A stretch of 63,840 nucleotides of DNA, filler included, from Hausera hauseri (lineage: Eukaryota): the NCBI GenBank assembly GCA_046269625.1. It is 12 parts of 12 records of this genome, joined end to end, with 100 filler letters (N's around TTAATTAATTAA, not from the genome) between each part and the next. Parts side by side here need not be neighbours in the genome. Positions count along the whole stretch, not along the records: positions 39,386 to 44,651 come from JBJURY010295279.1; 11 more parts are not named here. One strand, given 5' to 3'. Shown here piece after piece: positions 39,386 through 44,651 of this stretch; position 1 is the first letter of the stretch; each line of letters starts with the position of its first letter. Under the pieces are notes generated by a model that saw only the letters and a list, made by a program, of their open reading frames with translations, had not been told where the DNA came from and made no database searches. Made by a program: the position numbers and the translations under genes.

Positions 39386-41016
39386 AAAGGCAGCTCCTGA
39401 GTCTATAAGAAAGTCGATATGTGAAGTACCTCTGCATAACAGTACAGCTTTCAACAGAAAGACTGCAGAGGCGGTGTCGAAACGGCCAAAAGATGGAGCG
39501 ATATTGCCTGCACCAGAATGTGCCATAAAATCTGGTGGCAAGCGAGATTTATCGTTGTAATGTTTACAACCAGGCACGCATGATCTAGCCTGTGACTGGA
39601 ACTTTTTGTGGTAGACACAAATAGGGTTGTCCACAGCGTACCTTTTACTGTAGAACCGACAACCCAAAAAGCATTTCCCAGCATTCCTTTGAAATCGCGT
39701 GTGATAGAAGCAAGTCATGCGTCCGCCAGGTGAAATGGATCAAGTAGAGTGTCTGGAAATGCTTCTCTCCCTTGAAGGTCTGGTTTCACTTCGTCGAGGA
39801 CCATTAAGATTATTTAGTTGGGTAGTAATGGTTGATATCGACTACTGTAACTTGTCAAACTGTTGCTGCACCATTTGAAATTGTTGAGTAAAAATGTTAT
39901 ATCTATAGTTGGAGCACATATGGTTGCAGCCGCAATAGGAAGAGAACTGTTAGTATGAAGAATCTCAAAGGATTTGTCAGCCATTATTACCAGTTTTTCG
40001 ATAGCAATGGATTCATCGACAACGGTTAATAAGTTTCTGATTGAGGTGGGCAACGATGACAAGAAATAACGGTAAATTAAATCCGCGTTATTCGTAGGTG
40101 TCACTCCTAGAGCGCTAAACTGCATAATGGCCGTATGGAGAAAATATGATGGCTTTTGGTTTCCTACTGCGTGGTCGTTAAAATACTTTTGTATTATATT
40201 ATCAATCTAAAGATCTGTGACATGCAGTACAGCTTTACAGAGTGTATTGTAAGGTATCGAGGATTGTAGCAGCTCGGATATATTACTAATCTGCTGCTTG
40301 ACGTTGACAGGCAGAAGGATTAAAAGACTATTGGCTCGCACCAAAGAATCAGTAATGTTGTTCGATTTTAGCCACTGTTGGCGGAATTGGAGCCATGGTT
40401 TGCAGGAGTTGTTTTTGTCGAGAAAATATTCCACACAAGGTAAATTTAACGAACCTCGTGACTGTTGGGAGTGTGACAAACGATAGACGTTGCCTGTATT
40501 TGTGGATTTGTCATCCGAGCAGGATGGATTTGGATCCGATCCACCTCGGAGGCGAAAATGGAGCATAAGGTGGATGACTGGACATTCATGGCATACGAAA
40601 GACAAGAGTGAGTCGACGGCATGTACAATGGTACCTCGATGTGTAAAATAGAAATTGGCAGTGTCGAGTGAGAAGGATAGAGAGGTGTATAGTAGCTGCA
40701 CCGTGGAATTGAGTGGAGCCTTAATAATCGTTATGTTTTGATTGTTATTGAAGATAAGAAGGGAGAGTTGCAGCGAAACAATTCCACGAGAATGGTAAAA
40801 TGCAAAAGGAACTTGTGCTGTTTTCTTCCTTGTTAACAAAAGATATGGGCGTGCAGTCGGGATAGCGGTGGCAAGTGATGATTGGAATAAAGCAGTGTCC
40901 AAAGATAATAAGCTAAAAAACCTTTTAATGTGAAAAATGGTGGGAGATGTGAGGAATTTGTAGATGCGAAGAACATGGCTGCACCGGTGGGCATAAATCA
41001 GTAAAAAGAACCTCAC
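39386..41016 (-). mobile_element. gag: CsRN1-like Gypsy gag-protease with N-terminal ubiquitin-like domain
   Basis: Ub-like domain ending RLRGG (40540-40773). Gag motifs PWLQ...NITDS...LP...PYNTLCKAVL and GNQKPS...FLSSLPTSIR...MAD, two C-X2-H-X9-C-X3-C knuckles, and protease FLIDSGA at the contig end. Confidence 0.82.
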
Positions 41017-41749
41017 CCACCTGTGTTTGAATATCTGAGTCCTGGATGTCGTATTTGGTCACATCTGGAGTGTTTCCCCCAGTGGACCATCCTTGTTGAT
41101 TAAATGGATGCCGGTCTCGTCGACACCTCTCCAATATTGGTTCTTTCTTCCTGAGGTTTTCGATAGCATTTCAACTAGACTTTTGGTGAGCATTTTGGTT
41201 TCCAAGCTGATATCCTGTTTTCGAGCCATCGTTTCGAGTTTCTTAGCAGTCTTCTCCAATTCTTTGTTCTGTTCAGCCTTTTTCTTTTGCAATTCATCAA
41301 GCATAATCGATATAGGAATTGTCGATAAGACGTTATCAGTTGTGTTCACGGAGATATTAGACATATCACTACTGGTTATACCATCCTCAATTTCACTGTG
41401 AATAAGACAGTCAATTAAACGATCCATTATTTGAAAGCTGATAATTGCAATATCCATGGACACCATTAGGACGTTGATTTCTTTCGTCACTATACGAGAA
41501 ACAGTCTGTTGAAGAAGTAATTCTTGAATGATTTGTTTCCGTTTGTCAAGTCAAGATCGAACGATCAGTCGAATAAAAGAATCCATTACATAATTGAAAG
41601 TCTGTGTTAAACGTTCGACAACAAATTGACACAACAGTTCGTAACTAGTGACAGTTTGATCAGATTTAGTGTAGGACATTGATATGATATGTTCATCACT
41701 GTTTCGATAATGTGATGACAGTTCACTGCTACTTTTCCGAGTGGTCAAA

Positions 41750-42085
41750 TGATTGATTTCCATTATTTGACGGACGATTTCATTTGCAATTTGATTACCC
41801 CACTCATTTATCAACGGCATATTTATATTATCAATAGAGATTGACAATTTTTTAGCAGCCGGTGGCCCAAATGTTGTGTCTACTTGTTTCTCAACAAAAC
41901 TTTCAATTGTGCGCTGAATTAATGCTGGAGTAGTAGCAGATGAAAAGTTAAAAGATTTAGAAACATGAGATTCAGGATTATATTTTGCCATAAATTTCGA
42001 TACTATAACTGTCTTAGCTGTTCCTTGTTCACCAATCAATGGGTCAGATTTCCCTTGTTTGGCAATGGTATCAATGAGAGTTTCA
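41750..42085 (-). pseudogene. Isolated fragment of axonemal dynein heavy chain (DNAH5/8-like, AAA3 P-loop)
   Basis: [10 protein letters not shown]...FNFSSATTP...[44 protein letters not shown]; no flanking dynein sequence. Confidence 0.8.
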
Positions 42086-42697
42086 GTCCTTACATTATCA
42101 ACATTAGGTACAAGAATTTTCGAATATCAGGAACGTGATCTGTGGCTCGAACCAAGGCAGATGTATTGGGATTGTCCGTATCGCTGTCCAATGATTGTAT
42201 AATATTATTGCAGAGTTTAAGACCAACGATACAAACATCAGGATTGGTGCTGCTGCCTCTGAGAGTGGCCAATGGGATGAAAATGAATGATAAGATAAAA
42301 ATGAATGATAATATGAAAGTCAATGACAGAATGCAAGTTGATGAAAAGATGAATGTAATGAGAGAATAAACATTTTATATGTTACGCTTTGATGTCATGC
42401 AATGTACTCAAATGATATAATGTGTAGCGCCCTAGGAGTAAGTTCGTGTCAAGAGTATCCCTCAGGATACAGCACTCTTTCTTCAGTGTGAGTTAACGTG
42501 AGTTGGATGTTTTGTTCAGCATCTTGTCTGAAGCCGCTACTAACGCTGCGTCCCACGTGAAGCTCCGTTAGGCCATTGTCATCATTTTGGCCGTTTTGTC
42601 TCGGAAGCAGGTGACACTGACCAGCAGCGCTGCTGGCCGAGCTATGTCGGCTGTAACCGCTGACCCGACGGTCACCCTCACGGTGGGACGCCGCTAG

Positions 42698-43864
42698 TCA
42701 TTCTGACAGCTGCGTGTTTGTATTGAGGGCATCTTCTTCGTAATCCCTCACTCCCTTACAAACCTTACATGACAGCAGACGCCGAAATGCGTTGTAGAAA
42801 TTTCTATTAAAATAATAATACAGTAGTGGATTCATAAGAGAGTTGATATAGCCGAGCCACAACGCAATCTGCCAGGGTACATACATCAGTGAGTATCCAA
42901 GCAGAGGGTCGATGATGTTCATAATGAAAAACGGAAACCAGCACACGGAAAAGCAGCCCATAATAATTCCAAGCGTTTTGGCTGCTTTGGATTCTTGTTT
43001 AAATTTGCTTTTTCTTTTGCAGTGATTATAATGATTATGATTCCCAGCAGCTTCAAGGGTTCGAATCTGATGCGCTTGTTTGACAGCCGCCATGTATATC
43101 TTTACATTACAGACAGCCATAAACGCTACGGGAATGTAGAAAGCTATCAAGGAGCAGATAAATGCGAAAGGTATATTCACGACGAACGAGCAGACTTTGG
43201 CGTCTGTTGGATACGCGCAGCTGACAATGTCTTCAATTCCGACATGATTCCATTCATTGAAGATGGGAATAAATGAGATGAAGATCGGTGTCATCCAACA
43301 GAAAGCAAGCATAGCTGCCACCCAACGGAAAGATAAACGTTCGTGGAGAAACGGGCGACAGATGGCAAGGTAGCGGTCTATGGCGAGGCACGACAGATGA
43401 AAAATTGACACGGTACACATCATAACATCAAGACTGGATGAAAGCTTACAAAGCAACTCGCCAAGATGCCAGACTCTGTTGTTGACTTCTTGGTATATGG
43501 AAAACGGCATGACGAAGAGGGAAACACACATATCAGCAACAGCCAATGAAACCACGAAAGCGTTTGTAGGCGTCCTGAGTTTTCTGTGTGTTATGACAGC
43601 TAAAATGACGACGCAGTTCCCAAACATGGTCAGGATCGGCACGCATATGAGAACCACTGAAATAGTGTATCTCATGGCGTCGTCGTATTCTGGAGGTGGA
43701 CCGGCCATATGGGCCAAAATTTCCTCGCATTTTAATGGTGATGAATTGAAGTTGTTTTCCGCCACTGGATGAACTGTAACGTCGGCGTTGATGTAAGCCA
43801 AATGATCGATCTCCTGTGGGGAAATCGAAGTTACTAGATCATGTCGACTACCTTTAGATACCAT
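42698..43864 (-). CDS. HTR4: 5-HT4-like aminergic class A GPCR, coding region uninterrupted
   Basis: GN, SLAVAD, D3.32 (LDVMMC), DRY, WMTPIFISFIPIFNEWN, CSFVVNIPFAFICSLIAFYIP, KAAKTLGIIMGCF.VCWFPFF, WLGYINS.MNP.LY. TM4-TM7 closely resemble 5-HT4. First ATG at 43864; a splice acceptor-like TTCTTGTAG lies just upstream. Confidence 0.88.
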   Translation of the reverse strand: MVSKGSRHDLVTSISPQEIDHLAYINADVTVHPVAENNFNSSPLKCEEILAHMAGPPPEYDDAMRYTISVVLICVPILTMFGNCVVILAVITHRKLRTPTNAFVVSLAVADMCVSLFVMPFSIYQEVNNRVWHLGELLCKLSSSLDVMMCTVSIFHLSCLAIDRYLAICRPFLHERLSFRWVAAMLAFCWMTPIFISFIPIFNEWNHVGIEDIVSCAYPTDAKVCSFVVNIPFAFICSLIAFYIPVAFMAVCNVKIYMAAVKQAHQIRTLEAAGNHNHYNHCKRKSKFKQESKAAKTLGIIMGCFSVCWFPFFIMNIIDPLLGYSLMYVPWQIALWLGYINSLMNPLLYYYFNRNFYNAFRRLLSCKVCKGVRDYEEDALNTNTQLSE

Positions 43865-44039
43865 CGTGTGCACACATTTATTGAAACGCACTGGCTACAA
43901 GAAATACATTAATGTTAACCAGCCAATACTATTAAGCTCAAAACTATTATTTTAATATTTCTTACTTGAGAATTGATGCCCTTTAATGTTAATTACTTGA
44001 TTAATGGAGATCTTTGGAGTTATTTAAACTTATGAAGGG

Positions 44040-44651
44040 ATTTATAAAGATACTGCTTATGTTGTATCCAAATCCAGCCATTATATGTGTTGAAAATCTC
44101 ATGTCTCTTATGATATTCCATAACTTTTTATCTTGTACACAGTCAAAAACCTTGGTGCAATCAATGAAACAAGTGTGTAGGTCTAAGTTGTACTCTCTGC
44201 ACTTCTCGAAGATGTTTCTCAATTTAAAGATATGGTCTCTGGTGCCCCTACCATGTCAGAGCTGAGACTGTATTTCGTGTATATCTTCTTCTAGTTTCTT
44301 TTTCATTCTCTACATGATGATGTGTAAGAGGATTTTACTGGCATGGCTTATAAGAGTGATGGTGCTGTAATTGGTACACAATTTTAGATTGCCTTTCTTT
44401 GGTATATACTGATCTTTTCCATGCTTTGGGCCAATCAGCACTTTTCCAGATCCAAACACATGGTGTATGATAGACTCGGGTGCTAGCTTCCCCTCCTGCG
44501 TGATTAGTTCAACCGGTATGTCATCACAACCTGTATGTCATCACAACCTGGTGATTTCCCTTTCTTTAGGCTATTGGTTACGGAATTTCTTCATCTAATG
44601 TAGGTTCTGGTTCTTTATCTTCGTCTTTCATATTTTCTGTATTACTTTTGG
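44040..44651 (-). mobile_element. RTE-like LINE RT fragment
   Basis: KGKSPGCDDIP, NYSTITLISHASKILL, NLRNIFEKCREYNLDLHTCFID. Confidence 0.85.

Follow-up and report, generated by a model that had tools for sequence, protein, structure and literature searches.

5-HT4-type receptor gene of Hausera hauseri

The window, i.e., the whole 63,840-nucleotide (nt) stretch of DNA analyzed here, filler included, joins 12 parts of 12 records of the Hausera hauseri genome (assembly GCA_046269625.1) end to end. In the part that comes from JBJURY010295279.1 (positions 39386-44651 of the window), we report a single-exon gene for a 5-HT4-type class A G protein-coupled receptor (GPCR) whose UGA stop codon is directly followed by CUAG, by an in-frame extension of 82 sense codons and by a long hairpin that opens at the stop itself. 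Here we evaluate whether this UGA is a candidate for programmed readthrough, as the original prediction had claimed. All features listed below lie on the minus strand and are given in positions of the window.

42701-43864, minus strand: coding sequence (CDS) of the 5-HT4-type class A GPCR, single exon, 388 amino acids, last sense codon GAA (from the open reading frame, or ORF, Pfam, homology and start alignment)
42704-42874, minus strand: independent structured domain at the 3′ end of the CDS, its last ~171-174 nt (from synonymous and dinucleotide shuffles and the joint fold)
42698-42700, minus strand: first stop, UGA (from the sequence; position common to all gastropod ortholog models)
42694-42697, minus strand: CUAG directly 3′ of the UGA, also within the outer helix of the stem (from sequence and fold)
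42452-42697, minus strand: extension of 82 sense codons, rich in Ser, Arg, Gly and Ala, with no Met and no Pfam domain (from translation and Pfam)
42676-42698, minus strand: 5′ arm of the long-range stem, starting with the A of UGA (from fold and duplex energy)
42563-42675, minus strand: interior of the hairpin, 113 nt, itself largely paired, e.g., 42671-42665 with 42565-42571 (from the fold)
42539-42562, minus strand: 3′ arm of the stem, encoding L-H-V-G-R-S-V-S, i.e., the central part of the Bulinus-conserved block (from fold and alignment)
42449-42451, minus strand: second in-frame stop, UGA, followed by C (from the sequence)

The receptor ORF runs uninterrupted in one exon from the ATG at 43864 to the TGA at 42700-42698 and encodes 388 amino acids. 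In all protein searches the receptor and the extension were used as separate queries. The receptor matches Pfam 7tm_1 (rhodopsin family) with an E value of 1.2e-62 and shares 73-82% identity with gastropod proteins annotated as 5-HT4, in alignments covering 90-100% of the receptor, so that the 5-HT4-like identity first proposed for it stands. Its nearest relatives come from Physella, Biomphalaria, Bulinus, Aplysia, Lymnaea and land snails; farther ones are bivalve, cephalopod and brachiopod proteins, and then vertebrate 5-HT4 at ~45% identity. The top 70 matches are all mollusc and lophotrochozoan 5-HT4 receptors, with vertebrate 5-HT4 next. No protein of the library is more than ~82% identical to the receptor; therefore, the source species itself is absent from that library. 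The DRY, NPxxY and CxxC (palmitoylation) motifs are kept, and the ATG aligns with the starts of the orthologs. By homology, the gene is a gastropod 5-HT4-type receptor, with ligand and coupling predicted.

Open frame behind the stop

The reading of the DNA that the original prediction gave for the stop region, a TGA-CTAG stop followed by an 82-codon open frame, is borne out by the sequence: TGA at 42700-42698, CTAG at 42697-42694 and the next in-frame TGA at 42451-42449. Read in its two alternative frames, this stretch has three and 10 stops. With first-order Markov models of the extension, of the CDS or of the wider region, the probability of at least 82 open codons is 0.025-0.042, i.e., 0.04 even if the extension's own composition is used. 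The GC content is 0.555-0.565 in the extension and 0.40-0.48 in the receptor, and it falls to 0.33 immediately past the second stop. Seventeen codons further on there is another in-frame TGA, in AT-rich sequence. The extension contains the motifs RRVS, RHSS and GRSVSS; the "added kinase sites" first described for it are accordingly putative sites, a reading from these motifs. In a low-coverage DNA run (X1), the reads are identical to the window wherever they fall; the stop is not covered, and 42403-42722 is not usefully covered.

Hairpin 3′ of the stop and structured domain 5′ of it

Folding of the sequence behind the stop gives an interrupted 22-base pair (bp) stem that spans 160 nt and consists of an outer helix of 7 bp (42698-42692 with 42539-42545), a middle helix of 9 bp (42691-42683 with 42548-42556) and an inner helix of 6 bp (42681-42676 with 42557-42562), with one 2-nt and one 1-nt bulge between them. 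In a 311-nt context the pair probabilities of the stem are 0.5-1.0. A stem of ~20 bp closing a ~115-nt loop had been proposed; the stem is real and is slightly longer than that, 22 bp with 113 nt between the arms. The fold has a z-score of -3.65 against dinucleotide shuffles (0 of 200 as stable). Against peptide-preserving controls, in which synonymous codons were permuted or resampled, the z-scores are -3.8 and -4.6, with none of 400 shuffles as stable in either case. The duplex between the first 25 nt past the stop and the downstream 212 nt has an energy of -35.1 kcal/mol, which was equaled by one of 2000 shuffles of those downstream 212 nt. The hairpin and the open frame are more than chance.

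A second structured domain lies on the other side of the stop. The last ~171-174 nt of the CDS have z-scores of -3.84 against synonymous shuffles and -3.48 against dinucleotide shuffles, while in a sliding synonymous-shuffle test along the gene the 15 other CDS windows all stayed below 1.9 in absolute z. This domain holds a 15-bp helix in which the codons of NSLMNP (NPxxY motif) pair with those of KVCKGV (palmitoylation motif). If both sides are folded jointly, the upstream domain closes 3 nt ahead of the UGA, whose A is the first base of the downstream hairpin, i.e., the stop codon sits within a 5-nt linker between two long helices. Four bivalve loci with no stop at the equivalent site show nothing unusual in their fold (z of -0.2 to +0.4).

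Stop position among orthologs

We aligned 16 gastropod orthologs and listed the tails of 120 homologs; please note that these are protein models, so what is compared is the position of the stop. The same stop position is found in ~26 gastropod ortholog models from heterobranchs, caenogastropods, vetigastropods and Patella, and these models derive from independent genomes and from transcript-length assembled contigs (Logan). The tails are themselves conserved, ending in ...TQMSE/D in heterobranchs, ...TNTSE in caenogastropods and ...T-x-x-SE in Haliotis, Gigantopelta and Patella, and a nemertean and several unnamed lophotrochozoan sequences end at the same position. On these models, the stop position dates far back, and conservation includes the short C-terminus. 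Behind a stop of such age, only chance would leave 82 codons open if there were no selection. The shared C-terminal sequence, T-x-x-S-[ED]-COOH, does not clearly resemble a PDZ ligand. Two land snails, Bradybaena and Candidula, have two receptor paralogs each (388 amino acids, and 387/381 amino acids) with the same stop position.

Bivalves and cephalopods read on past the homologous acidic residue. Four bivalve-like metagenome loci have uninterrupted DNA with no stop there (...TD-LSHS...). These marine-metagenome loci (L001:3000-3260, L002, L003 and L004) continue for 27-36 codons past the gastropod stop position, and the veneroid type of bivalve tail reads L-S-H-S-A-S-A-N-S-H...NNNVEL. Scans of genome and viral contig collections found no relatives, and the scan of metagenomes found bivalve-like loci only.

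Conservation of the extension

One gastropod model provides a view of what lies behind the stop in another lineage. The Bulinus truncatus model (496 amino acids) skips the stop, and the nonrepetitive part of its tail aligns to residues 38-63 of the extension in frame 0 with 14 of 26 positions identical (E value of 2e-6), VGRSVSS-x-FR being in common. A Smith-Waterman score of 66 compares with at most 45 among 5000 shuffles, and frames 1 and 2 score only 19 and 15. The model looks like an ab initio artifact, and we used it only as a view of Bulinus sequence. Since the receptor core is only ~81% identical between the two lineages, a neutral 3′ untranslated region (UTR) should not align, and from this alignment the block homologous to Bulinus is under constraint. 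The match continues for ~10 residues beyond the stem arm with conservative replacements (G/A, Q/D and D/E), which suggests a constraint on the peptide. The annotated tail of the Bulinus model (residues 405-496) passes through seven copies of a 15-amino acid unit (DNWTYMANILITTDQ), most likely a tandem DNA repeat of the 3′ region swallowed by the ab initio gene model. Used as a query, the Bulinus tail region matched only itself.

Homology between the extension and the constitutive tails of bivalves was also considered and is unsupported: the best BLASTP E value was 0.076 in a set of 33 sequences, and a profile of nine veneroid tails gave a nonsignificant E value of 8.6 against the extension. 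What the extension and the bivalve tails share is a local pattern only, i.e., an acidic residue, then L/V/I, then S/T..H.

Proposed readthrough mechanism

We propose that the UGA at this conserved position is probably leaky by design. To programmed or functional readthrough at the snail 5-HT4 UGA-CUAG we assign a probability of roughly 0.5. Most ribosomes would terminate and release the 388-amino acid receptor ending in the conserved ...T-x-x-S-E, while a minority would decode the UGA by a near-cognate tRNA (Trp, Cys or Arg in eukaryotic readthrough) and continue for 82 codons, which would add an 83-residue Ser/Arg-rich and probably disordered tail. Readthrough would be favored both by the CUAG directly 3′ of the UGA and by the long-range hairpin opening at the stop. 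Once the UGA occupies the A site, the outer helix of 7 bp would be inside the mRNA channel and necessarily already unwound; the inner 15-bp helix (9 and 6 bp, with a 1-nt 5′ bulge) would then start 6 nt past the stop, at the channel entrance, an arrangement close to that of the alphavirus and plant-virus stimulators.

Both elements have been validated elsewhere, as the original prediction held. UGA-CUAG is a leaky context in AQP4, MAPK10, OPRK1, OPRL1 and MDH1; all tested human UGA-CUAG genes showed at least 3.5% readthrough, with OPRL1 at ~31%, and only 23 human genes carry this context against ~39 expected (PMC4132726). A deep-mutagenesis preprint of 2026 confirmed the CUAG core. A UGA-CUA with an extended 3′ stem is the validated arrangement in alphaviruses and plant viruses, where the stem has 10-12 bp, a 1-nt 5′ bulge, a spacer of 8-9 nt and a loop of ~100 nt, and raises readthrough up to 10-fold (PMC3159437). 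By analogy with these systems, readthrough of a few percent is biochemically likely at the snail stop. Ribosomal readthrough, its rate and the effect of the tail on receptor regulation are what we infer from these features.

Several points weigh against this interpretation. The short form is the main functional product, as the strong conservation of its C-terminus shows. Part of the constraint on the Bulinus block may act on the RNA, since this block and the 3′ arm of the stem overlap. The full stem begins at the stop codon, i.e., with a spacer of 0, whereas validated stimulators start 7-9 nt downstream. As a query of its own, the extension had no match in 1.8 billion representative proteins or in a word-based search, which is expected if the extension goes unannotated. 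Its synonymous codon usage in frame 0 is unlike that of the receptor (-0.118 per codon, below both other frames), and its GC content by codon position (0.65, 0.49 and 0.51) is weakly periodic, both being weak tests because the training set has 388 codons and the stem may constrain codon choice; neither speaks for a coding extension.

Other explanations of the stop region

The main rival is a structured 3′UTR element, serving, e.g., mRNA stability, localization or protein binding. The open frame and the CUAG would then be side effects, any readthrough would be incidental, and the extension would not have been selected for a function. This explanation ranks as the main rival because our best statistics are structural, concerning the RNA rather than coding, and we consider it possible but rather unlikely. 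A GC-rich helix has few stop triplets and the CUAG is simply part of the outer helix, while the second structured domain just 5′ of the stop suggests a larger RNA element centered on the stop region. The overlap of the Bulinus block with the stem arm, the deviating codon usage and the missing protein homologs fit this explanation too, and the conservation of the short C-terminus points to the short form as the functional product. Against it, 82 open codons remain improbable under the extension's own composition, the similarity to Bulinus is specific to frame 0 and goes beyond the stem arm with conservative replacements, and the second stop is exactly where the GC content drops. A UGA with precisely this CUAG context is also rare, about one in 256 UGA stops.

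Alternatively, the stop could be removed from the RNA, by an in-frame alternative intron or by adenosine-to-inosine editing of UGA to UGG, and the extension would then be translated. We regard this as improbable. Vertebrate 5-HT4 receptors do vary their tail by splicing, and in the Bulinus model ...ALNATQ is followed directly by the homologous tail, so that the stop is skipped. In the window, an in-frame GT at 42707-42706, 7 nt before the stop, and an AG at 42601-42600 would delimit 108 nt, placed much like the intron of the Bulinus model. Two in-frame GTAAGG donors, at 42768 and 42759, could also be spliced to the AG of CTAG, for an intron of 75 or 66 nt. These sites are poor, however. The first donor reads GTCAGA, its acceptor has G at -3, and a pyrimidine tract is missing at the CTAG acceptor. 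The two GTAAGG sequences are dictated by the conserved C-K-V-C-K-G codons, and splicing from them would remove the palmitoylation motif, which is conserved. Nowhere in the region is the GC content higher than in the putative intron, and the window seemingly has no AG at the position homologous to the Bulinus junction. Among the 120 homologs, RefSeq models and transcript-length Logan contigs included, there is no spliced long-tail isoform with the sole exception of the Bulinus model. For editing, the A of the UGA forms the first pair of the 22-bp duplex, and two long duplexes flank the stop, as ADAR substrates require; but this A sits at a helix end and has a 5′ G, which is the least favored ADAR neighbor.

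All explanations other than readthrough, a structured UTR and splicing or editing together deserve very little weight. One takes the stop for a nonsense allele, for an assembly error or for the mark of a pseudogene, with the true protein running on, which the 82 further open codons and the bivalve and cephalopod orthologs that read on might suggest. We reject it as most improbable: the original prediction had named a nonsense allele or error as what could overturn it, and every gastropod ortholog model, from independent genomes and transcript assemblies, ends at the same residue, while the receptor ORF is intact and highly conserved. As to selenocysteine, we know of no selenoprotein family among GPCRs. 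Encoding of this residue by the UGA is hardly credible even though the open frame follows and some selenocysteine sites have adjacent 3′ stem-loops (PMC4132726), since a search of 41000-43000 gave nothing above gathering score and no selenocysteine insertion sequence (SECIS) or other Rfam family at E values up to 10, and bivalve orthologs have neither Cys nor selenocysteine at the site.

Neighboring sequence

Downstream of the receptor on the same strand (41554-42039, minus) lies an ORF fragment with a dynein heavy-chain AAA_7 domain (E value of 6.8e-30), flanked by further stop-interrupted ORFs. In run X1, 42000-42334 has a word depth of ~45x with many variants, against 3-5x over the receptor. 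This stretch looks like a high-copy repeat or retrocopy with a dynein fragment in it, and not like a working gene. At 39389-39718 (minus), an ORF cut by the edge of the part contains two copies of C-x-Y-H-x-x-F-x5-C-x2-G-C-x-Y. It has no Pfam match; a zinc-knuckle region, gag-like but degenerate and derived from a mobile element, may account for its Cys/His motifs.

Possible origin and significance

At the homologous site, the tails read ...TD-LSH... in bivalves and cephalopods and ...SE-stop-LAASH... in gastropods. It is conceivable, although we think it quite improbable, that the leaky stop is ancient, i.e., that a stop at this tail position, which is present from nemerteans to all gastropod clades, is ancestral in lophotrochozoans and was read through for a second tail, and that bivalves and cephalopods later fixed the long form by loss of the stop. 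The two helices that clamp the snail UGA would then be a tunable switch between short and long receptor in neurons, possibly sensitive to temperature, helicases or editing.

Our literature search found no reported readthrough in a mollusc receptor and none of a mollusc 5-HT4 extension. If our interpretation is correct, the molluscs, a phylum with no reported case in the searchable literature, would have a programmed-readthrough gene, and UGA-CUAG would serve to make an alternative tail in two independent GPCR lineages, the vertebrate opioid receptors and this one. The interest of the gene would lie in the host, a mollusc GPCR, and in the two-helix clamp around the stop. The 5-HT4 tail controls desensitization, trafficking and partner binding; diversity of this tail made by the ribosome in snails and by splicing in vertebrates would be convergent evolution. 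A cellular hairpin like the alphavirus stimulators would provide a compact model for how RNA structure tunes termination. Serotonin signaling in gastropods (Aplysia, Lymnaea and Biomphalaria) is classical for learning and for parasite-host biology, and a hidden receptor isoform would bear on gastropod pharmacology and annotation.

Comparison with known systems

The snail gene shares the 7-nt UGA-CUAG with OPRK1 and OPRL1, and also with AQP4, MAPK10 and MDH1. OPRK1 and OPRL1 are likewise class A neuronal GPCRs, and the product would again be an extended cytoplasmic tail beside a dominant short form (PMC4132726). It differs from the vertebrate class in lineage, being a mollusc gene, and in the length of the extension, 82 codons against 13 in MAPK10. 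It also has a large 3′ hairpin, whereas RNAz predicted no conserved 3′ structure in AQP4 and MAPK10.

With the UGA-CUA/CGG elements of alphaviruses, tobra-, peclu- and furoviruses (Firth et al. 2011, PMC3159437), the snail gene has in common the UGA followed by CUA and a long-range stem with a 1-nt bulge on the 5′ side, a partly structured loop of ~100 nt and a span of ~140-160 nt. In contrast to these, it is a cellular gene, with a longer stem of 22 bp that opens at the stop codon; only the inner 15 bp are near the viral distance (6 nt against 7-9 nt). In the hepatitis delta virus amber/W site, a stop within a duplex is likewise followed by an open frame that leads to a longer protein, but there the edited A lies in UAG with a favorable 5′ U, whereas the snail A follows G and is at the end of the helix.

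Among invertebrates, the snail gene resembles the Drosophila readthrough genes with 3′ stem-loops, kelch and hdc, and the abundant neuronal readthrough of insects, in that a nervous-system-type gene has a long in-frame extension and an RNA structure next to it. Those cases are based on coding signatures from many species and on experiments, the snail case on one genome and one ortholog model. Vertebrate 5-HT4 splice variants belong to the same receptor family and likewise provide one seven-helix core with several cytoplasmic tails; there, the tails are made by splicing, whereas the snail gene is a single exon through the stop with weak candidate splice sites.

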